The notes under the pieces were generated by a model. It had not been told where the DNA came from and searched no databases. It worked only from the letters and a program-made list of their open reading frames with translations. A program made the position numbers and the translations under genes. Below, in pieces: positions 1,323-53,797 of a DNA stretch of 64,000 bases. The DNA comes from Sphaerodactylus townsendi (taxonomy: Eukaryota), in the NCBI RefSeq assembly GCF_021028975.2, contig NC_059429.1, positions 81,096,001 to 81,160,000 of the forward strand, given 5' to 3'. Numbering within the stretch: position 1 is the first letter of the stretch; each line of letters begins with the position of its first letter.

Positions 1323-3132
1323 AAATACATGCATGTTTTCCCCCTCACTGACAGAGAGTACACTGGGAAACAAGGAGGCCCCGCAAATCAGCTTTCAGTT
1401 CCCTGGCCATGGTAAAATAAAGTCTGGCATGCCAGGAACGGTTCTGCTTACAGTGTCAAGTAATTTCACAGAACAGACAAAATATGTCAGCAGGCTTTTA
1501 AGCTAATGGTGGGGTTCAGAGCACACAATATTGATGATATTGGCATTTAATATGATACAGAGCTTTCCCCCAGTTCTTTTAAAACTGCTGAGAAGCATCT
1601 ATCATGACTGAGTTTTGTGGGATGGGTCACTTTCTGGCAGAAGTTCAGAAGATGCTCCTCAGAAATGGGATTAAGATGCCACTGGACCTACATGCTCACC
1701 TCAAATGACTACTTCTTGGAAATAAGGGGAATTATACCATAATATTGGATGTTAACTTAAACCAGATGTTATGAGGAAGAGACATGAGGTGGTAGCAGTT
1801 CCATATCTTTGACAGGTCTCCTGAGCTCAAAACAGCATTTGTAGTGCCAAAAGAGATTTTTTTCCCCTCAGGTTATTTGGCTGAGGTCGTGGAAGTAGTT
1901 GTCTTTCCATATAAAATAGGAGTTACATGACTTTGGAGTGCTTTTCAGTGCCACACAACTATGAATCTATGAAAAGTTCATTTATATTAAGATAGGCTTC
2001 CAGCTTGATAATATCTGGCTGATGGCCTGTAACTCTGTGGGAACCTATTCTGCTTTCATTGATCGCTTTGCATTGCTGCCTTGTAATTTCACAATACAAA
2101 AAGGTCTTTGGCCTTTAAATTCCTTGCAAATTCTGAGCAGTTCCATTAGCTTACTGTGGAATTGAATCAGGTGCCAGGATCACGGAGCAAATCTCAGCCG
2201 CTCAACCACTCCCCTCTCTCCCCTTTTGATTGGTATTCTTTCTTTCATTCCCCAGCTCTCACTTCCTCCACAGACCAAGCAGAGCACCGTCAAATTGATT
2301 TCTCTTTCATAATTTCTTCCTTGGCTATGCTGTTTTCCCAAGAGATGAATGAGCATCTCTACAGGAGCATCTAGGAGGCAAATGATTATGGTAACACAAT
2401 CCCTCAACATATGGATCCAGGTAGGGCTCAGAGTGACTTGTCTAAAGTCATATTATGCGCTTGCAAAAATCGAGGAATTCAAATTTCTTGCTTTTCTTTT
2501 ATTAGTTTTTCCTTTCTCAGATTCTTTCCCTTCCCTTTTTCTCTTTACTTTTGTCTCTCCTTTCCTCCTTCAGTTCCCCCTCCTAATTCTCTATCCTCTT
2601 TCCCCAGCCAATTCTTTGCTTATACCTGAGGCTTATTGATTCTGCCATATAAAATGTTGCTATTTATGGATGCTTCTTTAGGACAACAACTTTCATCTCA
2701 TTTGTTACATTCATGAAAAACAAAGCTTATTTGATGCAATCCGCTGGCTCCAGAGAATAGCTCAGTAGAATTCTCCCATGCAGCCTTTGGCCTTACACCT
2801 CTTATATCTCTGCCTTTCTGCATCAAATACCCATCCCCTCAACCCTTAGCCTAAACCTTTGCACTTTTCACATATTCAGTCCTGAGAAAACTGCAAGAAA
2901 ACAGCTTAGAGATTATGGTCTTACCTCTGGCTTTGGAAAATAATATGCTGCGCTACTCTCTGTTTTAAATGCTGCAACACATTATTTACTATATCAATTA
3001 CTGAGAAATCTAGTCAAATATTGAGAGTTCCAATATGGCAGAAAGCACTTCCAAATCTCTTCCAGGTTTACAGATACATACACTTTGCAAGCTTTTATTA
3101 TGGAAGCTGATGGTAGTCAGACTCTTGGTAGC

Positions 3133-3295
3133 TAGGGTTGCCTGATGAATAGAGAAAAAAATGTCCTGTCCATTTAACAGAGGCTTAATAGGATGTTGTT
3201 TACCCCAACCCAATCTTTTCTAATCTTGGGGGCTCTTAAAAGGAGAGCCACCTGCAGCTGTAATAAAAATTAAGTGCCTCTACCTTTAAAAAACA
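3133..3295 (-). mobile_element. Same MITE family, degraded copy
   Basis: tagggttgcc..tgtcctgtccatttaacagaggcttaataggatgttgttta is the reverse complement of the family's 3' arm. Confidence 0.5.
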
Positions 3296-26032: not shown

Positions 26033-26395
26033 TAGCACTTCCAGCAGGCCTGCACATTAATACCGTATCCCTTTAGTAGAGTCTTAATGTGTGGAAATGG
26101 GTAGCTGAAGCTTTCATGACATGCAAGTAAATAATATCACCTGATAAAAAGCGCACCCGGACTCACCCGGCGCGCCATTGTGGCAGGGGAGGATTGAGCG
26201 GCTGCTCTCCTTCCCCTTATGCCTCAGAAGGGTGAGTGGTCGTAGCTTGACGGTTAGGAACCATCATGTGCTGACAAGGGGCGGGACGAGGACTATATAA
26301 GAAGCGAGTGCCTGGCTCGGCAAACCATTAAACAACATCCCATTAAACTTCTATAAAACATAAGACGTTTGTTCTCAAGATAGTTGGCAACACCA
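26033..26395 (+). mobile_element. Same MITE family, interrupted by the Ngaro-like 5' fragment
   Basis: cttaatgtgtggaaatgggtagctgaagctttc..atcacctg..catcccattaa..gttggcaac. Confidence 0.7.
26149..26328 (+). mobile_element. 5'-terminal (promoter) fragment of a related Ngaro-type element
   Basis: aaaaagcgcacccggactcacccggcgcgccattgtggcagggg aligns with 35470 aaaaagcagcaaccgaatcaacgggtgcagccattgctgctgggg. Has a GC box at 26278 and TATATAA at 26294, is flanked by taaa/taaa, and interrupts a MITE. Confidence 0.7.
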
Positions 26396-27067
26396 CCTGA
26401 GACATACACTAAATGACCTCTAACCTGAAACATTTGCATGTTCAGTTTGCCATGGGACAGGGGTGTGTTTCAGCCACTATCAGAGAGGTATGACATCCCA
26501 TGTCAACCACCTTTTGGCTTTGTTTATGCTTTGAATCCTGTTATTGACAGGCATCACTGATTAATAGGGCTGCTACCTGATTAAATGAGTCTAAGTTTAC
26601 TAAGCCATCAATCATTTGAAGAAAGAAAGCATGCTTTCTTTGTTTGCAGATGATGTATGTACGGGTCACCAGAGGCACTCTCTTAAAAGTGGCCTTTCTG
26701 TTTGAGGGAGAAAAAAGAACACCTGTTCTAAGGCAGCACTGCCCATCTGCAGAAAACATGTTGCTTGATTAATCAGGGAGCGTTTTTTGTCAATCAAGAG
26801 ATTTTGAAAAAAATCTAATCAATCAACTAAATATTGTATCATCGATGATTGTCACCATGCAAACATGGTGACTATTTGTTATCATGCAAATCCACAATGA
26901 TTGTCATAATAGCAGACCACTTTGTGTATCTTATTTTTGCTACACACTGGTGTTGCTGATAATACCTATCACTCAGCATTAAACAGCTTTCATGGATAGA
27001 TACCACCAGACAATCCTTTTCTTTAGAATCAAGAAAAAGAAGCTTTTCAGATGTACTTCCATGTACA

Positions 27068-27225
27068 TAAGGATGCCAACAGTCTAAAGGGAAAATGCCT
27101 TTCCTCTTGAACAGGAGCTTAATGTGTGGAAATGGAATTCTGAAGCTTTTCAGGGCACAGAAGAAAATGACATCACCTGGTAAATAAAACCCATTAAGGG
27201 ACAGGACAGTTTTTTGACAACCCTT
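27068..27225 (+). mobile_element. Same MITE family, uninterrupted copy
   Basis: taaggatgccaac..cttaatgtgtggaaatgg..ctgaagctttt..catcacctggtaaa..cccattaagggacaggac..ttgacaaccct. Confidence 0.7.
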
Positions 27226-27689
27226 GTTTAGACAACCCTTGTCTTTCTATAACCAGAATTTATGTTTTACTTTTTTAAAACACATCTTACTTCTGTCTAA
27301 GCATTTTTGTGTTTGCCTTGAATTATTCAAAAGCTCTGACCTACTGCTATTTAATTATTTTTCTCTTAAAATACTTTTGACTCAATCAAATCAGTATTAC
27401 GGTTAGAAAATACTTATCATTTTTGTTCATTGTGTGAAGAGTTTGTGGGTACTTATTGGATGTTATAGTCTTGGCAGAGTTTGACAACAAGTATCAGGAT
27501 AATTTGACTCTCCCATTACTATTACTTCTCCCATTACTATTACTTCTCTCTTTTCTACTTCTCTCTCATCAGAAAGGCATCATCCAACTCATCAAGCTGG
27601 CTTGGGTGTCTGTAACAGACACCCTCGATGAGATCACTGCCATTTATCTCCCCCCTAATTTTTACCCAGATGCTCTCAACCTGACTTCC

Positions 27690-27965
27690 AGGATTTAAGT
27701 CCTGGATCTGCTCACAAGTGTAATCATCCCTGATATATAATGCTATTCCTCTTCTTTTCCTAGTTGGTCTGTTTATCTGAAATAGGTTATATTCCTCAAT
27801 TATTGCATTCCAATCATGAGACTCATCCCATCAGGTTTCAGTGATGTCTATTAAATTATATTTGCTTTGCTGTGTTAAGAGTTCAAGTTTGTCTTGTTTA
27901 TTTCCATGCTGTGTGCATTAGTGTAGAGACATCCAAGACCATTGTTTATCCCCTCTGGCTGCTTA
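27690..27965 (-). pseudogene. CR1 LINE endonuclease N-terminus fragment
   Basis: CLYTNAHSM..NKQDKLEL..ITET*WDESHDW..GIALYI. Confidence 0.85.
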
Positions 27966-28062
27966 TTTAAGGTTTTTTCCATTCCACTTTTGGGTTCTTG
28001 AACTATTTGCTCAGTTCTCTCTAAAACCTTCGGGCTATTATCCGTTAGAGTATTTGGCAATA

Positions 28063-28532
28063 TGTGTTAAGTGTTTGTAGGAGCAATGTCAGTTGCACCA
28101 TTGGGTTTAATTGTAAGTTAATCCTGGGCAGCTGGTTAATAAGAGTGACCTTTACCAACTGTTTACTAGTGTTGTAGCTTCTACACACACTCTCTATCCC
28201 TCTCCTCTATTCATATGCATGTTTGTGTGTGTGTTTCTCTCTCTGTGATGCTGTTGCTGCACATGCTGCCTGCTATCTCCTATTTGCAGTGTTGCTGTGT
28301 TGTTATGATGTGCTATCTGCTATGACATGCTTTGTATGCATGTAAGTCTGGTGTTTTTTACTTGCCGCTGCTTGAGCACTTATGTTTTGACTTCTTCTGT
28401 TGTAAGTATGTTTTTTATGTAGCCTGCATTATTTTTAAACACTATAAAGAAATAACTGTCTTAAGCAACTCTGCTGTGCATATTTTTTGCTCTGGTAGAA
28501 GCTGAGTGGCTTCAGCTTCAGTCCTTCTATCA
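28063..28532 (+). mobile_element. LTR-like insertion splitting the CR1 copy
   Basis: TG..CA ends and TG-rich interior; lies between the colinear CR1 ORF1 and ORF2 pieces. TSD unclear. Confidence 0.4.
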
Positions 28533-28559
28533 TTATCTCTAGCACTTGATGAACTTCTG

Positions 28560-28812
28560 CCCACTTGGATATTGCCTCCCTCCCCCACATAACTCAGTTT
28601 AAAGTCCTCCTGATCAGGTTTGCTGGCTTCCTAGCAAAAATGTTCTTACTTACAGCTATGAGGTGCGACCCATCCCTTGCCAGTAGTCCATCTTCATGGA
28701 ACTGTAGACCATGGTCCAAGAAGCCAAAACGTTCCTGGTGGCACCACTTGAGAAGCCAGTTGTTCACCTCCAGTACTCTTTTTTCCCTCCCTGGGTCATG
28801 TCCCCTGGATAG
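28560..28812 (-). pseudogene. CR1 LINE ORF1 (esterase) C-terminus fragment
   Basis: Minus strand VNNWLLKWCHQERFGFLDHG..LLARDGSHL..LIRRTLN*; colinear with the endonuclease fragment. Confidence 0.85.
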
Positions 28813-29377
28813 CTCAAGGGCTTAGGATGAAGGCTATGAGGTTTTATTGTTAGGTTCTGTGGGGCAGATTGTGAGCAAAACTCCAACAGCTTGCTGGCCC
28901 CATCAGCTCTCAAAGATCAATATGTTTTTGCCTGCTGCTAAGATGCAGTGTGTCACTGTCAGAAAGTACCTAAATTATCTGAACAGCGCTAAGAGGTAAT
29001 ACCAATTCTCTTTCCCACAGAAACCTGTTAGTTGCTTTTATCCTTGTTTGTTCAGTGGAGGAGAAACCTTCCTATCTTTTTCTCAAGAGGATGATGCTTC
29101 AAAGAAGAAAACTCTTTTTTGAGGGGTGTGTGTGTTACTTTTCCTTGTCAATTTCTTGGTCACATTTTTCTCCTTTGATGAAGTTTGCCAACCCTGAAAA
29201 AATGAGCGTGATTGGATCACTGTGCTAAATGAATCAGTGGGTGCTGACAAAGTGAGAAAACAGCCAGGCATTTACCTCAAGAGGATGACCTACATCTTCA
29301 TACAAATACTCTGCGGGTGCAGATGGAAGACAGCAAAGAGCCCCTTGGACTTTTGACACAGAGTTTAGGGGAGTATC

Positions 29378-30029
29378 ATGAGGGGGCGCCTTTCGAGACC
29401 ACATTCAGCCCGTGTTGCGCCAGCTGCATTGGCTCCCCGTGGAATTCCGAATCATCTTCAAGGTGTGGGTTTTGACCTTTAAGGCCTTACGCGGCCTGGG
29501 ACCCTTGTACCTTGGGGACCGCATTACCCCATATGTCCCTACTCGGCCTCTGCGCTCAGCAGAGGCCAATTTGCTGGTGGTTCCCGGCCCCTCAATGATG
29601 TGGCTGGCCTCCACGCAGACCAGGGCCTTCACAGGAACATTCTTCCTCCAGCTGTCCAGGCCCTGCGGGATCTTGGTGAATTCCGCAGGGCCTGCAAGAC
29701 TGAGTTGGCTTTGGAGTGACCAGCCGCTGAGTGTGGTGCCCCCTTTCTGCTCTTTTACATCTGGGTAATCCTCCTATGGAGGGGTCCAGCCGTTCCCCCC
29801 TTTTTTGGGGGAGGGTTTTTTAAATGGGTTTACCAGATGCCTTTTATCGTATTAACCACTGTTTTAAATGGAATTTTAGTAAGTTTTAATGATTATTTAA
29901 ATGGAGGGAGCCTATGTAATTTGTTGTTGTGTATTTGTATGGTTTGCTCCTTTAATCTAGTTATTGTGGTGATTATATTTGGTTACACTACCCGGAACCC
30001 CTTAGGGATATAGGGTAGGTATGCAAAAA

Positions 30030-30092
<63 letters not shown>
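29378..30092 (+). mobile_element. L2-clade LINE 3' fragment with (AAAT)n tail
   Basis: HIQPVLRQLHWLPVEFRIIFKV..TFKALRGLGP.YL..RPLRS; (aaat)n at 30027-30092. Confidence 0.9.
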
Positions 30093-30479
30093 AATTAAAA
30101 AAAAGTATTTAGAGACCATTTCCAAGAATATGTTACACAAAATACAAACACATGCTGGCATTTTCTTTGTCTACAAATTGTCATGCAAGCTTCATTCTTG
30201 TTCTTTCTTCATTCTGTGTTATAAGTATCTGCGAGCAGAGCCTAACACTGTCAAGTTAGTATCAGAATGTGTGTGCCAAGTGCAGCCAAGTTATAGCTGA
30301 TTTATGGCAACACCTGGTGGAGATTCTAAAGCAAGTGATTAAGGAGAGATGGTTTTCCATTACCTTCCTCTGCAGAGTCTTTCTTGGAGGTCTCCCTTCC
30401 TAGTTCTGACCTTGAGTAACTTCCAGGATCTGATGAGATCGGGCTATATTATATCCTCTTACACCCCTAATATCAAAAC

Positions 30480-31651
30480 TGGGGTGTGAAAAAAATATTT
30501 TTTCAGATTTGGATATATTGGACCCAAAATATTGTTATTTCCAAAATTCCTGAATTCCAGTAGTGAAATTTGTACACACACACACACACACGGAATCTGA
30601 AATTTTTGGTCCATTATTCCTTGTGTGGACATTTTCTAGGTGGCTGGGAGGGCTGTGTTTGAAGATACAGGCACCAAAATTGCAGTGGAGCTGTTGGTGC
30701 CTGTCCTTTAAATAACATACACATTTTAAGGAGATTGGACCAAGTCACCCAGTTCTGTGGGCCCCTGAACAGGATGTCCCCACCTAAAACAGAAGAAAGG
30801 AGAAAAAACCCTCCAAGCTGCTTCCAGGCAAAAGCCATGTCTTCAAGCAGTAATCACTGGTCACATCATGCCTCCCATGGAAGAACCAAAAGAATCACTC
30901 AAGAACCCAGTAACACCCAGTGTAACAGAAAGCCAATCTGTCAAGTGAAACAGAACTAGAATCAACCCGGAGAATCTCTACAGTGGAAATTCCAGGTGGG
31001 AGGGCAAGCAGAACAGAACCAATGGCAATGTGCAGAATGCTCATCAGAACCCAGAACCACGGAGAAGTACAAGCACAACAAAATTAATATAAAACCAGAG
31101 AATCTCTGCAGTGAAAACTGAAGGTGGGACTGCACTTTTGCACATCCAGCAGAACCAATTGCAGTGTACTAATTCTCAGCAGAACCCAGTGCCAGTCTGG
31201 CAGTGCAAGCTCAACAGATCTACTGTGCATCCAGAAAAATCACAGATGGTAGAACAAATCTAAGCTGGTGGTTGCAATGTACATAATGTCCAGCAGAACC
31301 CAGTGCCACAGTGGCAGGGCAAGCTCAACATGACTAATATCAAACCAGAGAAGAACAAATCCAAACTCTGAGCAATAAACAAAATGGTAAAAACCTGGAA
31401 GGGAACACAAAGCAATTCATCTAAAGAAAAAAACCCTCTTGAAACTGTCTGACAAAGAAACCTGAAACTGACAGAGGCAGCCTGGCAAGCCCACAGCATT
31501 TTCCCAAGATATAAAACCAAAGAGAAGAAAAGAAGAGAAGAATAAATACTCCACATAACCTTGATAATACTTTTCAATCTTCCTGGTAAATCCCAAATAT
31601 TTCTGGAATTTTAAGGACTATTTGTTCAGTTTCCTGAATATACCCAAGCTA
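30480..31651. mobile_element. Degraded non-autonomous hAT-like element with an internal tandem array (~30960-31340)
   Basis: Decayed ccgaa-type subterminal motifs, module shared with 44480-45180 (gcaccaaaatt.., gggccc), repeated cagcagaacccagtgcca. No TSD seen. Confidence 0.5.
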
Positions 31652-32861
31652 GGTACACCAGTAGATCAGATATGATGGAGGCCCAAGGTGATGTGGAGGA
31701 ATTTGCTGAAGACTTACAATGAAGAAATACGGAGAGATACTCTAAAGAGAAATTATGGATGAAATACAAGCAGTAAGCATTAATGGCTCAAAATCTAAAG
31801 GTCTGTGCTACCTTGTTGATAGTCAGGAACTGAAGTCTCTGTGAGGCACTGCCTCTTGTCATAATCACTCCTTCCCTCTGTATCCAGGCCACTGATCTTT
31901 CTCCATGGCTCTTATCCCTTCTTTGACTATCCATGTCATGTGAAATGTGACTTGTACCTCCAAAAAGTTCAATCATCTTTCTAATTCAGTGATTTTCATC
32001 TTTGTCTGGTAGGACTCTTATGTCTTTAACAGTTGGATAACAGACAGAAATAAAGCGGGTCAAACTGTGTCTCTCTGAGATAAGAACAGCTGAAGCTGCT
32101 GAATTTTTGCCACTCGGGCAAAGAAGACCTCAAGAAAGAGAAGGTGAACCTTACTCTCATATACCTTCATGGGTTTGTTCAGGGTTCAGCTGCTTGCATT
32201 CCCTTAGTTTTTTCCCCCTCAGTCTTACCCACATGTCAGTCAGGGATACTATTTAGGTGGAGTGAATGGGAAGGGTTACCCCTCATTGATTTAAGACCAC
32301 ATGTGATTTATTCTTCCAGAGCACCTATATCTCTGGATGTTCATGGGTTCCTCCGCACAGCGACTACACACATTTCACAGATTTAGCTATAGCCACAATG
32401 AGCGGCAGGAAATTTCTCAAAATGTCTCTTTGATTTATAGCTCTAGTTTATTCTCCAGGAGGCCGGCAAGTTGCCCTTAGCACATGAAACCTCAGAGGGA
32501 TAAATAATTTAACAGGTGGTTAAATATTCTTTAAGGTCTAGAGAACACCAGCAGGGGCACAGATTTTAGGGTGAAGATGAAATTACAAATTGAGCACAAG
32601 AAAAAAGGATGGGTGAGGGAAGCTACAGAAAGAACTGACATCACTTTCCAGTCCTGGCAATTTGACACCCGCTGTCCAGCTTGTTTAATTTGTACAGTAA
32701 GGCAAAAGTGGCACTGAAATCAGCTTCCATAAGTGGGGTGACCAGGTAAAAGCAGGCACAAAACAAGAGATACGACAGAAACCAGAATCCAAAAAAGGCA
32801 GATTGTCCTGTACTGCAAGAAAAGAGATCAAGGCTGAAGGAGAACTGCACAGGCCTAAGTA

Positions 32862-32862
32862 G

Positions 32863-32925
<63 letters not shown>
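32862..32925. repeat. (GCCT)n microsatellite
   Basis: Perfect tetranucleotide run. Confidence 0.97.
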
Positions 32926-32991
32926 TTACTCACTACCCTTTGCTGCGGTCTCAGGGCAAGTTACAATTTTTTTTAAAGCCTTGAGATCCAT

Positions 32992-33144
32992 GGACCCCTT
33001 CCGTACATGCAGAATAATGCAGATTCAATCCACTTTCACAATTGTTTGAAAGTGGATCTTGCTATTCCGCACAGCAAAATCCATCTTCAAAGTGCATTGA
33101 AAGTGGATTGAAAGTGTATTATTCTGCATGTGTGGAAGGAAGCT
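32992..33144. mobile_element. ~150 bp palindromic Harbinger-like MITE
   Basis: ccttccgtacatgcagaataat / attattctgcatgtgtggaagg; homologous to 51603-51743. Confidence 0.8.
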
Positions 33145-34129
33145 CAGCTGTAGGCAAAATTCCTAGAAGTGGGTGTTTCCCCAATGTTGGACATTTATAT
33201 TGGAAAGCTATGATAGAATGAGAAGCAATTGAGGACTGAGGAAAACCTCATAAAGGTGAGCTAAATATAAAGGCAACTCTTCCATTTACCATACTGTTTA
33301 GGAGGGATATCTCTAGGTACTGACTCTTGGAACTTTTTGTACAAGGCAGTAATTAAATCCATTATGCTTTCAATAGTATCTCTATCAGGATAGAAAGACC
33401 TTGGATGGAGGTGGGGGGGGGGGCTGTCAAGTCACAGCTGACTTATGGCGATTCTATACCCAAGGGAAAGGATAATGAGAGCTACTCCATTTGTAGCACT
33501 GTGTGGACAACTGCTTTTTGGAACTTGTGGGTAGTATGGTAGAGCAGTCCGGCCCTGAGTCAGAAAAGGTTGAGATAAAAACCATATCTCAACACAAAAT
33601 GATCAGTAATGTATTATTCTAGAATCTAAATCATGTAACTTGTATATTATTCCAATTTGTGTATATAATAAAATCTTTTTAATTCAATTCTATGTCTCCA
33701 TTTCTGTATGTACAGCCCAAAATATTTGTTCCTCTATATATGTGAACTCAATCACACACACTATATATATGAACTCAATAACATAAAACATATTACAGAG
33801 CAGTATATCTTTTTCTATATGATAATCATACAACTAGTGTCGATTAAAACAATGCAGTCATAGGTTTCCATCATATGCAAAATACATTAAGGTTTCACAA
33901 CTTATGACGCGTGCTACGAGGCTCCTGGTTATTTTCCTATTTCATGCCAGATGATACTGCTGACAGAATCTTCAACCAACTCATAATGTATTGAATCTTC
34001 TGTGTTGCCAGTATCATGTGGCAGATTTCATATTCACTGAGGAAGGATGATTGATGAAATACTGATTATTCATACAAATGAACAAGACGCAGCTGGAGTG
34101 CAGGAGTTCTTATCCGAGGAAGTGTCTCT

Positions 34130-34390
34130 TCTGGACATGTGGAGAGAAGTGCAGAGTGGTAAGCTGCAGTACTGGAGTCAAAGCTCTACTCACAACCTGA
34201 GTTCTATCCTGGCAGGTAGCTGGGTCAAGGTTGACTCTACCTTCCATTCTTCTGAGGTCAGTAAAAAAAGTATTCAGCTTGCTGGGCATAAAGGGCAGGT
34301 GACTGTGGAAGGCAATTGCAAGCCTCCGTGTAAATATAGTCTGCCTAATAAACATTGTGATGTGATGTCACCCTGGTACTAGAACCAGAG
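34130..34390 (+). mobile_element. Sauria SINE-like element
   Basis: caaggttgactctaccttccattcttctgaggtcagtaaaa core with ggaaggcaat tail. Confidence 0.7.
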
Positions 34391-35580
34391 AGTACCTTTA
34401 CCTTTAAATTAATAACAAATATAGATGAACATGGGAAGCAGATAAAAGATAGATTGGTGAATGACTGAGGAGGTGAGAATGAGGTAGGAAAAGAAGAGAG
34501 GATAAAGGGAAATAATATGGGGAAGGGGGTACACTGGAAAGTCCTTGCTCCCTACCATGCAACTGGGCCTGGCTCATAACTGGGTCATATTTTTCCAGGT
34601 AGTTGGTTCCGGAGCAGTTAAAGATAAGTTGGCTGTTGGGGGGCGGGGGGAGTGGGAAGGAGAGAAAGAACAGAGAACAGGCTATGGGGGTTTTCAGAAA
34701 AGAGAAAGGAAATAGTGGAGCAGGAAAAAAATGAGATATCCCCCACAAGTCCTTGCAAGTCCCTGCTTGTGTGTGTGTGGATGAATATGGAAAAGAAAGA
34801 AGAAAGGATGATAGTGAAAAATCCTTGGTTTGAAGTCAAAGGTAGGGCTCCTTTTTGGCGGATGTGATCGGGAACACAGCACAGCTGCCAAGAGATTAAG
34901 CTGTTACATGTTACTGTTGTTCAAGTACCAGCCCTCCAATCACACAAAGCCACCCCTAGACCACATTTCACTGCCTGTTGCATTCTGTTCCATCACCCCT
35001 TCCTTTATAAGTTGCCAAGCACAGTTGAAGGAGCTGACATTTCCAGCCTGGCTAACAGGAAGACAGGATGATTTTTCTTATGGTGTCTTTTTGACATGCT
35101 AACGTTGCTGAGGCACACACTCATGAATCCCAGGATTGGAAGGTGAGCAAATAACCTTTTCAAAAGAAGGCAGCGCTGCTCAGAGATACAGCTGTGGGTG
35201 CTAGACCTTGCAGGATTTTAATGAAGACACTCAGGAGATGGGTGAGGAGGGGAGCAAGTCATTGTGAAAAAGCTGAGGGTGTCATGGATTTCAGCTGTCT
35301 TTACATGCTGAAAAAACCCTGAGACAGGTGCATTTGTGTATATTGTGGGATTCTAAGAAGTAAGAGGGGAAATAGTTCCCTGTGACCATGAAAAATATTT
35401 TGCTTGGTGTGGGATAGAGTTGCTAAACACCTGAAGGAAAAACCTTGCCCCTAGAGGCTTATGTGTAGAAAAAAGCAGCAACCGAATCAACGGGTGCAGC
35501 CATTGCTGCTGGGGTGAGCTAAGGAGGCAAAATAAGTCTGCAAAGCATACCCGGACGGCATGCTGCAGGAGGGTGCAATG

Positions 35581-35624
35581 ATTGGCTCCGGGCCGGTAAA
35601 GGCGGGAGGAGCCTGAGTATAAAA
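35581..35624 (+). promoter_or_regulatory. Pol II promoter of the Ngaro-type element
   Basis: ATTGG (inverted CCAAT) 35581, GGCGGG 35601 and TATAAAA 35618, in canonical order and spacing upstream of ORF1. Confidence 0.7.
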
Positions 35625-35902
35625 GGGGCACCATACCCAGAGCTCATCCTTCTTGGCGGCGAGACTCAGAAAGGCGTGGTGCACGGAGACCGAGTCAAGC
35701 GTAAGGCCAAGAAGGAGCCTGACAGGGTATTTGCAGCTTGGTTTTCCCCCTCTTTTACTTAAGTCAACCCTCACTCTAGCTTTCTGCTTAAGCCCTCTCC
35801 TTCTTGCTCATTCCTTCACCCTAACACTTAACCTTTCCTTTCTTTCTCTGCACCCCCACTCTTCCTTCCAGCTGCCTACCCAGTTGAGGGGCTTTGGTTG
35901 CG

Positions 35903-37414
35903 ATGCCTCCAAAACGCTCCAAGAGCAAGGAGTCCCCTGGGAGGGAGCAATTCCCTTCGGGTAGGGCGAGGGCCCTCCTGAATAGGGTCCGAGCCTAGAC
36001 GGGCCCCGGGGCCGGCGGGGATGACCCGGTGGTTGGGTGTATCGGTGCAGCTGCCCGAGCAGCTGCAGCTGCAACCCTGGGCCTATCCCCGATAGGTCGG
36101 GGACGGGGAGTGGGCGCCGCGGGGCAACTCTCCTCAACCGGGAGGGGGCTCGGCTGCGGCGCGGCAGGGGAGGCCTCCACGGCGGCGGAGCCTCCTCTGG
36201 GCCCGGACGCGCACCCTCTTTCTTCGGGTGCAGTGTCGACGGCGGACCAGGCGCCTAGCTCTAGCCTGGTAAAGAGCCTGGCAGACACGCTGCTTCATCT
36301 TTCTCAGGCCCTTAGTGGGTCTTCTGGGAGCCTTGGGGCCCCTGTCGAGTCTGAGGACCTGGCACCATCAACGTCGGCGGCCGCCGGTGCGAGGGAAGCG
36401 GGCCCTTTGGAGCAGCCGGTTCAAGAATTCCAGCTCTCTCCTCCCGGAAGTGCTTTGACATCTGTCAATGCGTCAGTGGGCCCATCCGAGAGGGAAGGAC
36501 GGAGAAGGAAGCACTCGTCGCGGCATTCCCGTTCGTCTCACTGGTCTCCCAGCTCGTCTTCGTCCAGTGAGTCGATCAAGGACGACGAGATGCAGGCCAG
36601 CGGGGAGTATTGGTATCAAGGGGAGAAGGTACCCGCTTTGCCCTCTTGGTTAGCCAAGCGCAGGCGCCTTCGGGGACCAGAGGCACCATCTACTGGCTCA
36701 GCCTCTGATGACAATGGGAACCCTCCCGGGTCCCACCTGCCTAGGAAGCTGCGGGAGCGGGCCTTGGACGGGTATTACATGGACATATTTAAATGCTTGC
36801 GGCGGGAGGACGAGCAAGGTTTGTCCGGGGGCAAGGCCGACAGGAAAAAGAAAGACCCCCTGGCGGCAGAACGCAACTTTGATAACTGGTTGCAAGGTTT
36901 CAGCGAGTATTTAGCTTTAATAGCGGCCGCTTACCCTTTGTGGGCCTGACACCTGGTAACTCACATGTCGCACGTTTTGCAGGCCCGATCCTTAGCCGGG
37001 GAGGCCGCGGCCATAGCATACGATGAGGCAATTAGAAAGAACGCCTCGCATAAAAGCCGCTTCCGCTGGGACCTTATTCATGACCAAATGTGGATGGTAG
37101 TAGTCCAGCCGGCCATGAGAGGGGCTCACGACCCCGCTGTCAATGACAGACCCCCTAAGGGCCCTTCAGCAGGAAAAGGGACAGGAAAAGGGACAGGAAA
37201 AGGGATGTGCTGGGAGTTTAACAGGGGCTCTTGCCAACGAGCCAGGTGTAAGTATGAACACGTTTGCTCGAACTGCTCTGCAAATCACAGCAGGGTGAAT
37301 TGCCCAAAACCAGCAGGTCGCCCTTCTTTTCGGCAGGCCCGGTTCCCTGGCGCCGGGCACCCACAAAAGGACGCTGGCAGCCAGGGCGGCGGGGCCGCCT
37401 CCCAAAAGCACTGA
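35903..37414 (+). pseudogene. Gag-like ORF1 of the Ngaro-type element, interrupted by two in-frame stops
   Basis: ATG at 35903 (MPPKRSK..) is in frame with track ORFs 36029-36949 and 36965-37414, with stops TAG 35996-35998 and TGA 36947-36949. C-terminal CWEFNRGSCQRARCKYEH (CCCH finger) is followed by CSNCSANHSRVNC (CCHC-like knuckle). Confidence 0.85.
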
Positions 37415-37427
37415 CACCCCAGCCCCT

Positions 37428-39032
37428 TTGAGGACTTTGGCCCCCACCCCAGTGCGGCTCCGGGTGTTGCAGGACTGGCTGCAGCTCTACCCTGACAGAC
37501 CCGCGGCAGAATTTTGGGAAAAGGGTTTCTCCTCTGGTTTTAGAATCCCTTACCAGGGGCACAGGAGGGCCTATCATGCGAATAATTTGAAGTCCGTCCT
37601 AGAGCACCCTGATGTGGTGGCTGACAAGCTCCACAAGGAGGTGGGGGCGGGCAGGATTGCGGGCCCCTTCATCCAGCCACCATTAGCCAATCTGAGGATG
37701 TCTCCCATCGGGGTCGTTCCTAAGAAGGCCCCAGGGGAATTCCGCCTCATACAACATCTCTCCCACCCCCGGGGTGATTCCGTAAATGATTTTATTGACC
37801 CGGAGACATGCTCAGTAAAGTATGCCACCCTGGACGAGGCCGTCAGCCTGATTAGGCAGGCCGGCCCGGGTGCCTTACTGGCAAAATGCGACATTCAGTC
37901 CACCTTCCGGCTCCTGCCCATCTCCCCTCTGGACTTCGAGTTGCCGGGCATCCACTTTCAGGGGCGATGGTATGTAGACAAAGCAATGCCCATGGGTTGC
38001 TACATAGCCTGTGCTGCCTTCGAGGCGTTCAGCTCATTCTTGGAATGGGCTTTCACGCAGAGGGTTCCCTCGGGGTTAGTCACGCACTATCTGGACGATT
38101 TCCTCTTCGTGGGCAGGCAGGGCACTGAGGAGTGCGAGACTGCGCTGAGAGCTTTTCAAGCCTTGGCAGAGGAGTTGGGGGTCCCCCTGGCCCCCAACAA
38201 AACCGAGGGCCCAGTCGCTGTTCTCAATTATCTGGGCATACAGCTGGACACAGTCCGGGGCACCTCCTCCCTTCCTCAAGAAAAACTGCTCGCATTAGCC
38301 GATCTTATTCATTCAGTCCTGCCGTTAAGGAACTGCAGAGTGCGGCTGGTGCAGTCCTTACTGGGTCACCTTAATTTTGCCTGCAGGGTGGTGGCACCCG
38401 GCAGGGCCTTTTGCTCCCGGCTGGCCAGGTCATTGTCCGGGTGCAGGTCCCCCCAGCACCACGTCAGAGTCACCAGAGGCCTGAAAGAAGACTTGAGGGT
38501 TTGGCAAACCTTCCTCTCTGGTTTTAATGGCATCTCTATATGGCAATCATCGCTGGAACCCGGCCTGGAACTACAGGTGCATTCTGATGCCTCCGGGGTT
38601 CACGGCTTTGGTGTCTATTTCCAAGGGCAATGGTCTTGGGGCCTATGGCCCGCAGCCTGGCACACGATGGGAATCACCAGGGACCTCACCTTTCTGGAAT
38701 TATTCCCTATATTGGTGGCGTTTCACATCTGGTACGGTTACTGGCAGGATAAGCGGGTGCTCTTCTGGTGCGATAACCAGGCGGTGGTGCGGGTAGTGAA
38801 CCGGCAATCTTGTAAATCCGCACGGGTGATGCGGTTGGTGCGCAACCTCGTTCTCACTTGCTTAACTCACAATATTTCCTTTAAAGCCGCTTTCGTTCCA
38901 GGTTTGAATAACGAAATCGCTGACGCCTTATCTCGCCAGCAGGTGGACCGCTTCAGGCGCCTGGCCCCCGGGGCAGAGCTGTTCCCAGCAAATGTGCCGG
39001 CGGCCTTGTGGAACCTTGGCAGCGGACCGTAA
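37428..39032 (+). CDS. Reverse transcriptase / RNase H (DIRS/Ngaro-type pol)
   Basis: 534 aa open frame. RT motifs VVPKK..FRLIQHLS, KCDI, MPMG, HYLDDF, YLGI; RNase H motifs SDAS, FLEL, CDN, N.IADALSR. The track start is TTG, so the true start is unclear; the frame overlaps the end of ORF1. Confidence 0.95.
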   Translation: MRTLAPTPVRLRVLQDWLQLYPDRPAAEFWEKGFSSGFRIPYQGHRRAYHANNLKSVLEHPDVVADKLHKEVGAGRIAGPFIQPPLANLRMSPIGVVPKKAPGEFRLIQHLSHPRGDSVNDFIDPETCSVKYATLDEAVSLIRQAGPGALLAKCDIQSTFRLLPISPLDFELPGIHFQGRWYVDKAMPMGCYIACAAFEAFSSFLEWAFTQRVPSGLVTHYLDDFLFVGRQGTEECETALRAFQALAEELGVPLAPNKTEGPVAVLNYLGIQLDTVRGTSSLPQEKLLALADLIHSVLPLRNCRVRLVQSLLGHLNFACRVVAPGRAFCSRLARSLSGCRSPQHHVRVTRGLKEDLRVWQTFLSGFNGISIWQSSLEPGLELQVHSDASGVHGFGVYFQGQWSWGLWPAAWHTMGITRDLTFLELFPILVAFHIWYGYWQDKRVLFWCDNQAVVRVVNRQSCKSARVMRLVRNLVLTCLTHNISFKAAFVPGLNNEIADALSRQQVDRFRRLAPGAELFPANVPAALWNLGSGP

Positions 39033-39922
39033 TCACAGGTGTTTTGAATTCGTTAGCCCCGGCCCCGCGTAGACAATTCGACGAGGCCGTGCACTTCCAG
39101 AGCTATGCAGCAGCCGCGGGGCGCTCAGTCCACAGCGGGGTGGACACAGGACTGTTACTTGAGTACTTGGTGCACCTTCACGGTCAGGGGACACCCCCCC
39201 AGTCCATGGGGGTCCAGCTGGCAGGGATAGCGTTTTATTGCAGGCTTTCAGGTTTCCTGGATGTGACCAAGGCGTTTGTGGTTTGCCGGCTCTTGGCTGG
39301 TTGGCGTCGGGCAGGCCCCAGCCAGAGAGATTTAAGGCGCCCCATTACGAGGGAGGTGCTCCAGGCAGTCACAGGCACACTGCGGCAGGTTTGCGCTTCG
39401 CGCTACGAGCGTCTGCTCTTCGCTGCAGCATTCCACGTGGCACATCACGGGGCTTTCCGGCCGGGGGAGCTGGTTGCCCTCTCCAGGGAGCGGCTATCGG
39501 GCAAGGTCTTACAAATCCAGCACCTAGTACTGTCGGGGGATGGGGTTTATGCATGGCTGACCCATTCCAAGACAGATCAGGAGGGCCACGGCCCTTGGGT
39601 CACGATGCCGGCCCTACCGGGCGACGTGACTTGCCCCCTTGCCTCGTTAACTGCATGGCTCCCCCGTAGGCCTCGGCAAGGGGGGATGCTCCTGGTCCAC
39701 GAGGACGGTTCCCCCCTCACCAGGTTTCAGATGCTTGCCGTGCTTAGGGCATGCTTGGCGCGGTCGGGCTTGCCAGCCACTGAGTTTGGCCTTCACTCCT
39801 TCCGGATAGGGGCTGCCATGTCCGCAGCACAGGAAGGCAGGGCCCACAATGAGATACATACCCTAGGCAGGTGGCGCTCAGATGCTTTCCGGGCTTACAT
39901 ACGCCCTCACCTCTCTTGTTAA
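39008..39922 (+). CDS. Tyrosine recombinase (phage-integrase family)
   Basis: Catalytic set present: GAFRPGEL (R), SKTDQ (K), HSFRIGAA (HxxR), LGRWRSDAFRAY (W, Y). Confidence 0.95.
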   Translation: MEPWQRTVITGVLNSLAPAPRRQFDEAVHFQSYAAAAGRSVHSGVDTGLLLEYLVHLHGQGTPPQSMGVQLAGIAFYCRLSGFLDVTKAFVVCRLLAGWRRAGPSQRDLRRPITREVLQAVTGTLRQVCASRYERLLFAAAFHVAHHGAFRPGELVALSRERLSGKVLQIQHLVLSGDGVYAWLTHSKTDQEGHGPWVTMPALPGDVTCPLASLTAWLPRRPRQGGMLLVHEDGSPLTRFQMLAVLRACLARSGLPATEFGLHSFRIGAAMSAAQEGRAHNEIHTLGRWRSDAFRAYIRPHLSC

Positions 39923-39934
39923 TTCCTTTACAGT

Positions 39935-40540
39935 GACTCCAGGGACGCCCAGACTGTTGTTCGACAGGTGTGGGTCGTGGGGCACAGCATCGTCAACCGT
40001 GCTGGAGACTATGCCTGCTCGTCCGAGTGGGGCCGGCATCTCGGCTTGGAAGCATACCTGAGCATCACCTGGATGGGTCAGGGCAGCATGAGGTGGGCTG
40101 ACCTGGAATACACCATATTTAACTATGTTTTCCACCTAACTGCTCCAGACATTCTGGTCATCCACTTGGGCAAAAATGACCTTCCGGCAATGTCGGGCCT
40201 CGATCTGATGTGGGCTGTTGATGTCACTCTGAAGAGCCTGCAGAGGCATCTGCTGGACACGGTTCTTGTGTGGTCAGGGCTTTTGCAGAGGATTCTGTGG
40301 AGGGGTGCTGAGAAGCCCCACCGGGTGGACAGGGCCCGCCGCAAAGTGGACAAGGCGGCCGCCAAACTGGTGCTCTCTCTAGGGGGAGCGGTGGCAGATC
40401 ACTCGGAGATCTCCCACGACATCCACGATTTGTACAGATCGGACGGTGTCCATCTTACCGATTGGGGGATGGATCTGTGGCTACAGTCCATCCGGCACAC
40501 CCTTCTCCAAGTGGTGCGGAATTGGCAGGCTCAGGCTTGA
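39935..40540 (+). CDS. SGNH/GDSL-like hydrolase ORF
   Basis: Blocks VWVVGHS, LVIHLGKNDL (GxND) and SDGVHL (DxxH). A hydrolase ORF after the YR is a known trait of some animal Ngaro elements. No ATG upstream of the catalytic Ser. Confidence 0.9.
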   Translation, partial: DSRDAQTVVRQVWVVGHSIVNRAGDYACSSEWGRHLGLEAYLSITWMGQGSMRWADLEYTIFNYVFHLTAPDILVIHLGKNDLPAMSGLDLMWAVDVTLKSLQRHLLDTVLVWSGLLQRILWRGAEKPHRVDRARRKVDKAAAKLVLSLGGAVADHSEISHDIHDLYRSDGVHLTDWGMDLWLQSIRHTLLQVVRNWQAQA

Positions 40541-40675
40541 GAAGCTTGGGCGGGAGCTGCAAGAGGGGCAGCTTGTGGCGGGTTGGCAACGGGAGTCGCA
40601 ACATCTGGGGAGAAAACGAGCCATCCGGCAGGTTCTCCCAGGCTTGTGCCCTGCGGAAGGGCCGGGGTGTGTGGT

Positions 40676-40848
40676 GGGCCGGCTGGCAGGCCGGTAGGCT
40701 TGGCCGTTGCCTGACACCCCAGGGAGTGGGGTGGGTCGGGCCGGCTGGCAGGCCGGCAGGCTTAGCCAGTGCCCGACACCCCAGCAAGCTTGGGGAGGAT
40801 GGCGGGCTGGTAGGCGGTCATGGGCTTAGCCGGTGCCCGCCTCCTCAG
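40676..40848 (+). repeat. Three degenerate ~62 bp tandem repeats in the Ngaro 3' non-coding region
   Basis: gggccggctggcaggccgg(t/c)aggctt(g/a)gcc..tgcc(t/c)gacaccccag at 40676 and 40738, with a looser third copy at ~40801. Confidence 0.8.
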
Positions 40849-41001
40849 CAGGAGCAGGAAGGGTTGAAGCTGGAGTGTTACCTCCGGGGCTCCCCTTCCC
40901 GCTGGTGGCCCCAATGGAGATTGGGGATCGATTGATGTTGCGACCCGTTTGCTGCCCTAGCTTCTCTGTATATAGTTATTGTATATATTTGCATTTATAT
41001 T

Positions 41002-41007
41002 AATAAA
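41002..41007 (+). terminator. Polyadenylation signal of the Ngaro-type element
   Basis: AATAAA after an AT-rich tract, followed by GT-rich gtcgtagttgtgtcttt, ~85 bp from the element's right end. Confidence 0.65.
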
Positions 41008-42394
41008 TTGGGCTGCGGCCCAATCCATTTTTCCAAGCCTGTCGTAGTTGTGTCTTTATTTTGGCGGAGAAGGGTCTCACCATCTGCACGCAATGGGCAG
41101 CTGAAGCCTTTCATGACACAGAGGCAAGAGCAACACCATGACCCTCAGACATGCACAACAAAACACCCAGTTAAACATCTAGTAAAGAAGCAGGGCATGT
41201 TTTCTTCTGGTTGTTGACAACCATAGATAAGGGCATAGTAAGAGGGAAATAGGAAACATTTAGTGGAAACGTTTTCTGGATCCAATCTCATCTTTACTTG
41301 CTTATTAAACTTATTTTAGGACTTGAAATACATTTTAAAAATTTGATAGTGCATAACATTATACAATTTTGTTTATTATTGAAATTAAAAATATCCTGTA
41401 GTTTTGTTCAAACAAAATTACAAATGTGAAACGCACTAGAGAAAGTTTCAAACTGATGCATTCTCTGCTACCTGAGCTCAGATATCTTAGTTTACACCTA
41501 AAATGTTCTTCTTAAATAATTTCCCACCAAATAATAGAGGTTTTGTAATTGTTCTTCAGTAAGGCAGGCCAATAAGCTGCTAGTTTGGATGGAGCAGAGT
41601 GTCTATGTCACACCTCTTTAAGAAGTTAAAAGGTTGGTTATGGGTTGGTTGGTTATATCAAGAGAACAGCAGATTCAAGTTAGAAATGCTAAAGCAATTC
41701 CCAGTTTTATCTGGTTGACTTGAACCTTGGTGAGGAGAATCATATTTCTGCCCAAAAAGTAGCAGGGATAGTTTTGCTCCCACCCTTCTTAAAGAACTGG
41801 AGATGCCACACGCTGGGGTGGGGGAAAAGGAAGGGCTGCTGTGCTGTACTCTGTACAACCAACAAGAGAATGAGGTAGGGTTGGCGGTTCGGCCCCTCCC
41901 GAACGGCAAATCAGGCCGAGATCAGTCAGTTCGGAGGGGGTCGGAGGGCCGAGGAGCCGAGCCTGCCCCCTCCTCACTCTAAACTAACCGGCGCTGGGTT
42001 CTTCCCTCTCGGTGCCAGCTTAAGCCCGAGCCAGTTTCTGGGGAAAATAAAAATTTAACTCCTTCTGGCCCAGTCTTCTCCTCTGGCAAGTTTCTTGGGA
42101 CGAAATGAGCTTCCAAGTAAGCTTTGGGACGAAAGCAGCTTCGCAAGTAAAAAAACAAAACAACAACCCTACCGCAGTTTACCGCCCCCCCCACCCCACT
42201 CCCCGCAGTTTACAAGCACCCACCCCCACTCCAGCCTTCATTTCCCACCCAACTCCGCCGCCAAAACCCCAAGACTTCGAATCCCCATGCCGCCTTCTGG
42301 CAAGTGGCGTGGACGAAAGGGGCTTCAAACTACAAAAAATAAAACTCACAGAATGGTCCCCACAAAGCTTCCACCCAAAGAGACTCCCACTTAC

Positions 42395-51743: not shown

Positions 51744-52262
51744 CAAGATGGCCTGCTTGTTTACGCTGCTCCTTATCTGAGCTCAGCTATGCACTACAAT
51801 TCTAGGCACAGCTGACTAGGAATTGGCCTGTCACAGAATGAAAGAGGGCAAATAATGGGCTAACATGGCATGCAGTGAAGATTCACTATTGCTTCCTCCT
51901 TGCCATACAAAGGTCTTCCATGTGTACATCCACTGCGTTAATATTTGCTCGTTTGGAACCTGAATTATTGCCTGCAGTATAGAAATCATTCGCAAAAGAC
52001 CAGCCCCCATTATCCCAAGGAAGATGTAATTGCTTGCATATGTATGCCATCCAACATCTTGTCCTGTATGTAAACATTCCTGATGCTTCCCCATCTCCAA
52101 ATGGATCATAACCCATTCCTGACCCCAAAGGCACTCAACAAGGACACCAAGATAGAGTTAACACTATACTCACCTCATGTTGTATGCAAGGTAATCAAGT
52201 CACATCTGACTTATGACAACCCCATAGGGTTTTCATGGCAAGAGACTAACAGAGGTGTGGGG

Positions 52263-52430
52263 CAGTGGCATAGCGCCAAGGGGACAGGGTGGGGCGCGAT
52301 GCACTGGGCGCGCACTGGTGCAGAGGCATTTCCAGGGCATTCTGGGGGTATTCCGGGGCAGGGTGTGGGCGTGGCAGGGGTGCAGGACGCAGGCATGCCC
52401 CGGGCACAGTTCCCCCTCGTTCTGCCCCTG
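52263..52430. mobile_element. GC-rich hAT-like MITE
   Basis: cagtggcatag / ttctgcccctg termini and an abrupt GC-rich insertion; TSD imperfect. Confidence 0.6.
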
Positions 52431-53797
52431 GTAAAGGGTTCCAAGTCAAGAGACATTTGGAGGTTGTTTGCTATTGCCTGCCTTTGTGTAATAACCCTGG
52501 TATTCTTCAGAGGTCTCCCACCCAAATACAAGCCAGGGTCAGGGTTGAGAGTGTGTCACTGGCCAGCAAACCTCCATGGTGTGAATGGGGATTTGAACCT
52601 GGGTTTTCCAGGTCCTAGTGACCTAGTCTAACACTTTAACCACTGTGCCACATTGGCTGTCCCCATCAGCCTGCTATTAAAAAGATAGGATTTTTTTCCC
52701 TCTTCAAGGGAGTTGGCAACCCTGCTCTGGTCTTCCCTTAAATCTTTAGGCTAAAATTTATGCTGCTACAAGGCAGTTCCATGTAGGAAAATGAGCAAAA
52801 TATCACATGTGGTTGGAACTGTATATACTGTTTTTCTTTTTACTCTTCAAATACACAAGATCATATTTAATGTCTATGTGATGAAGGAAGTCTTGAATGA
52901 CACTCAAGGGTCCACAGGAGAGGTTCCAGTTTTCCCTACCTGAAATAATCCCAAAAGCCATTATTTGCCCTGCTGGGAAAAACTTATTAGATACAGACCC
53001 TCCACGCAGGCATGCACAGCAGAACACAGCACTGGCAAAGTAGGTCAGTGCTTCCAAAAGGCTGCACTAGTGATCTGAGACTCTATCTACATGGCTACCT
53101 CAGCAGAGCACTTAGCAGCATTCACTTATTTATTTATATACCACCCTTCTCTCTCCTATGGAGACCAAAGGCAGCTTACATCATTTTCCTGACCTCTATA
53201 TTATGATCAGAACAATCTTCTGATGTAGGTTAGGCTGACAGTGTGTGACTTGCCCAAGGGCACCCAGTAAACTTCTGTGGCAGACTGGACATTTGAATCT
53301 GTCTCTCTCAGATCCTAGTTTAACCATTATACCATGCTGGATCTCTCCATGAGTCCCCACTGACTGGACAGGGCCTCATGCCTGCTGTTATTGAAGTTCT
53401 TTCCATCCTTTAATTCATAAAGGGTAGAAATTTGATCTTTAGGCTCTGAACCTTCTCCTCTGTGAGCCCTATCAGCTTGTCAAAAGTGTAATTATTCATA
53501 GAAAATGGATGGATAAGCTACTATAAAACTGTAGTTATTCATTAACAGTTCATGGAGGTTGACATAATTCTATTATCAAAGAGCTTTGGAATATATAATA
53601 TGTATAGTTAAAGAAAAAGTATGTAAATAACATATTGGGGTGTCATTTTGAACTTTTGACCCCCTACAAAAATGTAGATCTGGCCCTAAGACTTGGATTG
53701 GGAAGACTGGGTTTCAGATCTCCACTGAGCTATACAAAGTCATTTGGGTCTTTTACACTCTCAGCTAAACTTATGTGCTAAGCTGTTGTGAGATGAA

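Follow-up and report, generated by a model that had tools for sequence, protein, structure and literature searches.

Relation of the locus to described Ngaro and DIRS1-like elements

Vertebrate Ngaro elements with an SGNH ORF, such as DrNgaro of zebrafish and DIRS-53_XT and DIRS-54_XT of Xenopus, are GC-rich, carry gag-like, reverse transcriptase/RNase H (RT/RH), tyrosine recombinase (YR) and hydrolase genes in this order, and have no methyltransferase domain (PMC9210276). Ngaros may also be nested in other mobile DNA, as in Cafeteria burkhardae, where types 1 and 2a target endogenous virophages (EMALEs). Of dozens of copies there, 82-91% lie in an EMALE, the preference tracks ORF1, and isolated repeat units are scattered through the genome (PMC8547959). 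In DIRS-1 of Dictyostelium and in DIRS1-like elements, integration by the YR involves a 2-3-nt overlap between junction and target and leaves no duplication, and DIRS-1 tends to occur in repeated DNA (PMC7192593, PMC3266345). A short-overlap model of integration has been published for DIRS-like elements (PMC3266345, PMC7192593, PMC9210276).

The window analyzed here, a stretch of 64,000 nucleotides from Sphaerodactylus townsendi (contig NC_059429.1, positions 81,096,001 to 81,160,000), resembles each of these systems in part. It contains an element with the gene order and GC richness of the vertebrate SGNH Ngaros, although without their split direct repeats, and an isolated terminal unit, both nested in a repeat as in Cafeteria; however, only two events are involved, and the target is a short dead repeat rather than an EMALE. 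Integration without target duplication and with a short overlap is held in common with the DIRS1-like elements, whereas their inverted terminal repeats, internal complementary region and methyltransferase domain are not, and their usual NTT/TTT junction is replaced in the window by AA on the sense strand.

A complete Ngaro-type element in A-ORFs-B form

The larger insertion (35472-41091, plus strand) is 5.6 kb long, starts with AAAGCAGCAACC and ends with ...CTGCACGC. All five of its ORFs were collinear in tblastn with those of relatives bearing split direct repeats (SDRs), with matches at the same positions in all relatives for the gag-like ORF1 (36029-36949) and for ORF2 (36965-37414), which has a weak CCCH zinc-finger match; neither ORF (36029-37414) matched a Pfam family at threshold. 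The RT/RH ORF (37428-39032) matched Pfam RVT_1 (E 6.7e-10), and among the best 120 of 1088 matches listed its best relative was a protein of A. sagrei with 63% identity, the others being uncharacterized or RNase H-named proteins, mostly from squamates and amphibians. The YR ORF (39008-39922) had no direct Pfam match and was identified by end-to-end alignment with relatives that match PF00589; the residues R151, K188, H263, R266, W289 and Y297 were invariant in all seven sequences, that of the window included. In addition, an SGNH/GDSL hydrolase ORF (39968-40540) was recognized by Pfam Lipase_GDSL_2, at an E of 7e-4 that falls below the curated cut-off, and by tblastn matches to all relatives (E 1e-24 to 1e-34). 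No methyltransferase domain was found by Pfam in the ORFs of the element.

The element thus has the RT/RH ORF, the YR with its catalytic residues in place of a DDE integrase, the SGNH ORF and the lack of a methyltransferase expected of a Ngaro, a YR retrotransposon of the order DIRS, but not the split direct repeats of the A1-[ORFs]-B1A2B2 arrangement: no repeat links its 5' 400 nt to its 3' 800 nt. Its 3' end could be aligned with the A. sagrei relative as far as ...CACGC followed by AA. Since copies without A2B2 (L005 and L012) exist in SDR-bearing families, the window element is read as the A-ORFs-B form. On its ORF content and collinearity, it is classed as a complete Ngaro-type YR retroelement copy, with open RT, recombinase and hydrolase frames, the recombinase ORF being intact.

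A solo A unit from a different Ngaro family

The smaller insertion (26148-26329, plus strand) is a GC-rich piece of 182 bp that starts with AAAGCGCACCC and bears promoter motifs, namely a GC box and, ~30 nt before its end, a TATA box. Its CpG observed/expected ratio (o/e) was 0.77, compared with 0.61 in the full element and 0.12-0.17 in the flanks. No resemblance between the piece and the element was found by blastn at a threshold as loose as E 10, and the global identity of the two A units (47%, 83 matched columns) lay within the range of interior controls (43-85 columns). However, the two inserts share a 45-nt terminal match, which begins at their left boundaries and scores 34 against 21 +/- 3 in shuffles (z ~3.8; reached by 2 of 500 shuffles and by none of 82 interior controls); both termini read AAAGC(A)GCA.CC ... 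GCCATTG at the same offset, and the GC and TATA boxes stand at matching distances. Furthermore, its length falls among the A repeats of the lizard relatives (161-223 bp); that of Xenopus measures 236 bp (PMC9210276). The terminal match, the shared promoter layout and the A-repeat size together argue for kinship with the element, and the piece is best classified, from these features, as a solo 'A'-type promoter unit of a Ngaro family other than that of the full element.

In its clean ends and its short, promoter-bearing terminal unit standing alone, this unit is like solo LTRs and the 'isolated AB repeats' of Ngaros, but it consists of A only, with no recognizable B part, so that recombination between A1 and A2 or between junctions offers no simple account of it. 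The piece has no second copy in the window, where tblastx, terminal motifs and a profile built from both A units recovered no other Ngaro pieces. A match to TGCACGCAA at 54572 was rejected as a Ngaro piece, as the small element around it, bounded by perfect inverted ends of 19 nt, is unrelated. Two GC-rich blocks (41.8-43.8 kb and 60.7-63.9 kb) had no Pfam matches.

The MITE-like repeat and the two insertion sites

Both insertions lie in members of one repeat family, which is short (~180 bp), non-coding and multicopy, as MITEs are. The nhmmer search detected three full copies and one or two partial ones in the 64 kb, the full and half copies being as follows: copy A (26033-26398, plus strand; also aligned by MAFFT), split by the 182-bp unit into 26033-26147 and 26330-26398; copy B, split by the element into a left part (35411-35471, plus strand, E 5.4e-10) and a right part (41092-41226, plus strand, E 1e-29); an uninterrupted copy, whose limits were refined from the predicted 27068-27225 to 27067-27243 (plus strand, E 1e-43); and a half copy comprising one arm (3131-3202, minus strand), which matches the profile on both strands (E 1.8e-7 minus, 0.0048 plus). 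A weak partial copy was also detected at 52663-52725. The full copies cover 557 bp, or 692 bp with the two partial ones, in agreement with the earlier estimate of less than 1 kb of the window. Relative to the window as it was before the insertions (58.2 kb), the family makes up 1.0-1.2% of the length and 1.4% of the AAA/TTT sites. Both of the two Ngaro-related insertions thus lie in a family with 1.0-1.4% of the sites, an observation that taken by itself counts against coincidence.

The inverted-repeat arms match each other weakly (minus-strand profile matches, E 0.004-0.01), no target-site duplication was recognizable around the repeat, and hairpin or cruciform folding of the copies does not exceed that of shuffles (z from +0.9 to -1.2). 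The profile was absent from ~257 kb of three other lizard genomes (154 kb, 65 kb more). In blastn, only 46-71 bp of the copies could be aligned, at 79-85% identity. Because of this divergence of ~20% and of the CpG contrast between inserts (0.61 and 0.77) and flanks (0.12-0.17), the MITE-like copies are evidently old and much older than both insertions.

The original prediction, that the full element splits one copy after gtgtaga and the small fragment another copy at a different place, was borne out at both sites. To the left of the element the flank stops with ...gtgtaga at 35469, and to its right the repeat continues with aatgggcagctg at 41092; the joined flanks align across the joint with the intact copy and copy A (nhmmer E 5e-10 left, 1e-29 right). 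The joint of the 182-bp unit reads ...cacctgat(aaaa) at 26145-26149 and then aaacaacatcc at 26330, with both flanks recovered by that profile (E 7e-32 and 1.5e-14). Projected on the intact copy, the sites fall at ~27130/31 and 27181/82, i.e., 51 bp apart, slightly more than the 45-50 bp first proposed. Relative to the repeat, the two inserts are oriented alike, and each lies in its central part, ~10 nt or less from the inner end of an arm.

AA is present at either end of each insert, at 35470-35471 and 41092-41093 for the element, where each copy is assignable to neither element nor target specifically, and at 26146-26147 and 26330-26331 for the 182-bp unit. With the empty site taken from the family consensus, both joints have the form flank-AA-element-AA-flank with no target-site duplication, and the rebuilt targets read gtgtaga-AA-tggg (family consensus ggAAAtgg) and cacctgat-AA-acaacatcc. 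The sites have only AA in common, so that neither a recognized sequence nor a fixed position in the target was found, given their spacing. The circle junction was also tested for a longer, att-like homology to the target. This was rejected, as no extended likeness was present and the real site fell at the 74th percentile when all AAA sites were ranked.

The AA rule in squamate relatives

The joints were compared with those of ten clean insertions from four related families in three lizard genomes (six copies from Hemicordylus, three from Podarcis and one from A. sagrei). The relatives from Hemicordylus, Podarcis and A. sagrei carry A1-ORFs-B1A2B2 repeats, and AA is common to the internal B1-A2 junction and both host joints; the exceptions are the left joints of L006 (AG) and L013 (AT). 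Two further A. sagrei copies (L009 and L010), whose ends could not be fixed, were excluded from the joint table, and the closest relative found, L001 of A. sagrei, is truncated at its 5' end and provides only a 3' joint; it is inserted in a 91-bp satellite. Moreover, two of the six Hemicordylus copies (L005 and L012) are repeat-less and end exactly at the B end, and such A-ORFs-B copies are a regular form of these squamate Ngaro families.

The comparator flanks are mutually unrelated, and their overlap with the circle junction is AA alone (AG and AT once each). An all-against-all blastn of the 12 rebuilt targets recovered the window pair (E 3e-8) and otherwise a single marginal 18-nt match (E 0.008), with no target-target matches among the ten comparators, and the ten insertions of the four families thus revealed no target preference. 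In total, twelve insertions (ten comparators and two in the window) from four squamate genomes display the AA overlap without duplication.

A circular intermediate and strand exchange are inferred here from the published DIRS/Ngaro model. A closed element, with its 3' end meeting its 5' end, would be joined by the recombinase to the chromosome across the two-base AA overlap, and integration of this kind would yield no target duplication. If no sequence longer than AA is read, any AA would be a possible site. The window is best explained by two separate, fairly recent Ngaro-type integrations into two old, diverged copies of one MITE-like repeat.

Coincidence or targeting

The original prediction held two hits in one small family to be unexpected by chance. 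This stands nominally, as the chance of both insertions falling in the family is ~1-2 x 10^-4 and that of the second given the first ~1-1.5%, values that were calculated post hoc. Small insertions are easiest to see where they interrupt repeats with nearby copies, which, together with the post hoc choice, weakens the nominal 1-1.5%. Recognizable dispersed repeats occupy 8.7% of the window, and if small insertions are noticed only inside repeats, the chance of hitting the same family rises to ~8-14%. Moreover, the indirect evidence leans against recognition of the MITE by the recombinase because the positions differ, only AA is common, the junction and target show no extended likeness, the copies are old and the ten comparators have just an AA overlap and unrelated flanks. 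Since the joints need only AA, a preference for the MITE-like repeat is unproven and coincidence is more likely; the favored, though by no means secure, explanation is coincidence plus ascertainment, probably not MITE recognition.

A real regional preference, with Ngaro integration biased to the MITE-like family or its central segment, appears doubtful. Rather than reading the target base by base, such a bias would depend on DNA structure, on chromatin or nucleosome state, or on the gag-like ORF1 protein acting as a tether, a role proposed for it in the Cafeteria Ngaros. The nominal chance of 1-1.5% (or 2 x 10^-4 for both hits) and the same orientation of two inserts that flank the central segment between the arms are consistent with such a bias, and precedents exist in the Cafeteria type-1 Ngaros, 91% of which lie in EMALEs in an apparently ORF1-dependent manner (PMC8547959), and in the insertion of DIRS-1 into DIRS-1 copies and centromeres (PMC7192593); the nearest relative (L001) is located in a satellite. 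However, the insertions belong to two diverged families, with 47% identity between their A units; a common preference would need to have persisted in both, and none was seen in the 10 insertions of four other squamate families. The MITE-like copies, ~20% diverged, fold no better than shuffles, the sites lie 51 bp apart, and the sample amounts to two events noticed after the fact. The more specific proposal, that vertebrate Ngaro integration is non-random beyond AA and that DNA structure, chromatin or ORF1 tethering directs at least two diverged lineages in this genome to the central segment of a single foldback-type MITE family, is correspondingly unlikely; if true, it would parallel in a vertebrate the preference of Cafeteria Ngaros for virophages.

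It is quite improbable that the 180-bp piece is not Ngaro-derived but another GC-rich insert or a long repeat variant, which would leave a single Ngaro hit and no coincidence to explain: the blastn blank to E 10, the control-range global identity of 47%, the lack of a second copy in the window and a solo A without B that simple recombination schemes do not predict all fit this reading, but its best local match starts from the left boundary of both inserts (z ~3.8), its GC- and TATA-box distances match, its length is that of an A repeat, its joints follow the AA rule, and its CpG o/e of 0.77 is that of young foreign DNA in a depleted background.

Implications

What is established is the AA rule, the regular A-ORFs-B form and a clean solo 'A' unit, which are useful for annotating such elements; repeat finders that rely on SDRs will miss A-ORFs-B copies and solo units. 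To our knowledge, site choice by DIRS/Ngaro recombinases in animals has not been studied experimentally. If these recombinases were shown to prefer a dead multicopy repeat, this would be a natural vertebrate example of a 'safe-harbour' strategy and would offer a handle on the recombinase.

Two insertions in one MITE-like repeat family

The original prediction held that two Ngaro-related insertions had landed in one small MITE family, which the recombinase might prefer as a safe-harbour target. Two search profiles were used, one of the ~180-bp repeat, built from the intact copy and two rejoined copies, and one of two short A units (A and B being the split direct repeats of Ngaro elements, laid out in full as A1-ORFs-B1A2B2, with the promoter in A). 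The repeat profile recovered the intact copy (27067-27243, E 1e-43), the halves of copy A (26033-26158 and 26304-26398; E 7e-32 and 1.5e-14), split by the 182-bp piece (26148-26329), and the halves of copy B (35411-35471 and 41092-41226; E 5e-10 and 1e-29), split by the 5.6-kb Ngaro-type YR retroelement (35472-41091), together with a half copy matching on both strands (3131-3202) and a weak match (52663-52725). This search of the window bore out the predicted joints of both inserts with the repeat, the uninterrupted copy and the family's extent of under 1 kb.

Between the repeat copies, blastn aligned just 46-71 bp at 79-85% identity, indicating an old family. Opposite-strand matches of the profile to its own copies (E 0.004-0.01), with the half copy matching both strands, fit a repeat with decayed inverted arms of ~55-70 bp, and "MITE" appears reasonable as a name for this putative MITE-like repeat. 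Folding above the shuffled-sequence level was seen in no repeat copy, and the profile was not found in about 257 kb of sequence from three further lizard genomes (a search of 154 kb, plus 65 kb of Anolis sagrei). Projected onto the uninterrupted copy, the insertions fall at 27130 and 27181, a spacing of 51 bp. Each is no more than ~10 nt from where the left (CTTAATG) or right (CATTAAG) arm ends internally; together they bracket a central segment, an arrangement noticed post hoc.

Chance, ascertainment and target preference

Both Ngaro-related insertions of the window (2/2) lie in a family making up 1.0-1.2% of its bases and 1.4% of its AAA/TTT sites, and the nominal chance of the second insertion falling in the same family as the first is 1-1.5%. 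Repeats with other copies close by occupy 8.7% of the window, and since a 180-bp insert is noticed most easily inside such a repeat, the conditional chance is roughly 8-14%. Considering this ascertainment, the post hoc discovery and the evidence for and against targeting, chance combined with ascertainment probably accounts for both insertions sharing one family, a real regional preference of Ngaro integration for the repeat is unlikely, and a non-Ngaro origin of the piece is more doubtful still.

A preference would accord with the low nominal chance, although the coincidence was itself found post hoc. The two insertions have identical orientation and each is close to the inner end of an arm of the repeat, yet their sites differ, with AA alone in common, and the repeat was already old and non-folding at the time of insertion. 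The nearest relative of the element (A. sagrei locus L001) sits inside a 91-bp satellite, and Cafeteria Ngaros favour another mobile element; against this, the inserts belong to two diverged families, and in four related families ten insertions showed mutually dissimilar flanks. The likeness of the circle junction to the real site was at the 74th percentile among AAA sites of the window, no better than others. When 12 rebuilt targets were compared, the window pair matched (E 3e-8), and otherwise there was one marginal 18-nt match (E 0.008). The balance thus leans against targeting of the MITE by the Ngaro recombinase.

Joining rule

Joints were compared in ten comparator insertions whose ends could both be fixed from internal repeats, from Hemicordylus capensis (L002-L005, L012 and L013), Podarcis (L006-L008) and A. 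sagrei (L011). The internal B1|A2 junction read ...X-AA-Y... in every comparator family, and the host joints were flank-AA-Y... on the left and ...X-AA-flank on the right, with exceptions at the left joint in L006 (AG) and L013 (AT), like the recombination over a short overlap without target duplication published for DIRS-like elements (PMC3266345, PMC7192593, PMC9210276). Both window inserts conform to this AA rule to the base: the element is joined as gtgtaga-AA-[AAAGCAGC ... CACGC]-AA-tggg, its rebuilt empty site gtgtagaaatggg agreeing with the ggAAAtgg of the repeat family, and the piece as cacctgat-AA-[AAAGCGCACC ... AACCATT]-AA-acaacatcc.

Origin of the 182-bp piece

That the piece is not Ngaro would suit the absence of blastn similarity to the element and a global identity of 47%, within the control range, but the top local alignment opens at the left edge of each insert (AAAGC(A)GCA.CC ... 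GCCATTG), GC and TATA boxes lie at matching distances in both, and 182 bp is the size of an A repeat. The local score was 34 versus 21 +/- 3 in shuffles, and was reached by 2/500 shuffles and 0/82 interior controls. The Hemicordylus A repeat likewise carries promoter boxes (CCAAT and GC). The CpG o/e of the piece is 0.77 versus 0.12-0.17 in its surroundings, and the piece is therefore young foreign DNA. On these sequence features, it is very probably a solo A unit from another Ngaro family.

The A-repeat terminus resembles the B-repeat terminus in Podarcis (CCTCG..CA; L006:5185-5200 and L006:12720-12740) and in Hemicordylus (A ..GAGCA vs B ..GTGCA; L002:6040-6050 and L002:12585-12598), and the beginning of A in Podarcis, AGACTC, has a near-copy after A1, AGACTG. 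Junction-like sites may therefore flank the A unit on both sides, a possible explanation for a solo A.

Elsewhere in the window, a small GC-rich element of ~326 bp (54538-54863) has perfect 19-nt inverted ends (GGCCCTTTCCCCACTTACC) and was rejected as Ngaro kin despite containing TGCACGCAA. The Ngaro terminal motif was not found in a ~190-bp GC-rich block (52240-52430), which appears to split a SINE-like repeat.

Coding content and form of the element

Dispersed repeats of the window are shared with A. sagrei at 83-88% identity, marking it as squamate DNA. Its AT-rich, CpG-depleted sequence surrounds a GC-rich block (59% GC, 35470-41091) with five collinear ORFs: a gag-like ORF1, a small ORF2, an RT/RH ORF (Pfam RVT_1, E 6.7e-10), a 304-aa recombinase ORF and an SGNH/GDSL hydrolase ORF, the same gene order as in vertebrate Ngaro elements (PMC9210276). 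The 304-aa ORF gave no match in a direct Pfam search; it aligned over its full length to relatives' recombinase ORFs matching PF00589 and retains all the invariant catalytic residues (R, K, HxxR, W and Y). Among the best 120 of 1088 matches in the protein collection, the nearest RT was an A. sagrei protein with just 63% identity. In NCBI gene models of L002:6821-11308, recombinase (460 aa) and hydrolase (363 aa) are separate spliced products with a common start position.

At L001 (1-6908 and 13766-19213), the closest relative of the element lies within a satellite array of >130 units; a poly-G stretch replaces element sequence at its 5' end, and across the insertion the satellite unit has lost ~50 bp. 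The 3' end of the window element could be aligned to this locus, with a polyadenylation signal, a TTGGCGG block and terminal ...CACGC, then AA in both. Its 3' non-coding region holds three tandem ~62-bp units, 79-81% alike (40664-40850).

Split direct repeats were searched for in the element and none was found; they are present in the relatives from Hemicordylus (A 177 bp, B 447 bp), Podarcis (A about 220 bp, B 294-366 bp) and A. sagrei L011 (A 161 bp, B 401 bp). A2B2 is missing from two of the six near-identical Hemicordylus copies (L005:5869-11771 and L012:5871-11771), which terminate exactly at the B1 end, adjoined by unrelated host DNA, indicating that the repeat-less A-ORFs-B arrangement is a regular variant. 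The window element is best read, from its sequence, as this form. Useful by-products of the analysis are the AA rule, the solo A unit and the A-ORFs-B form; copies of this last, repeat-less kind would escape tools that depend on split direct repeats.
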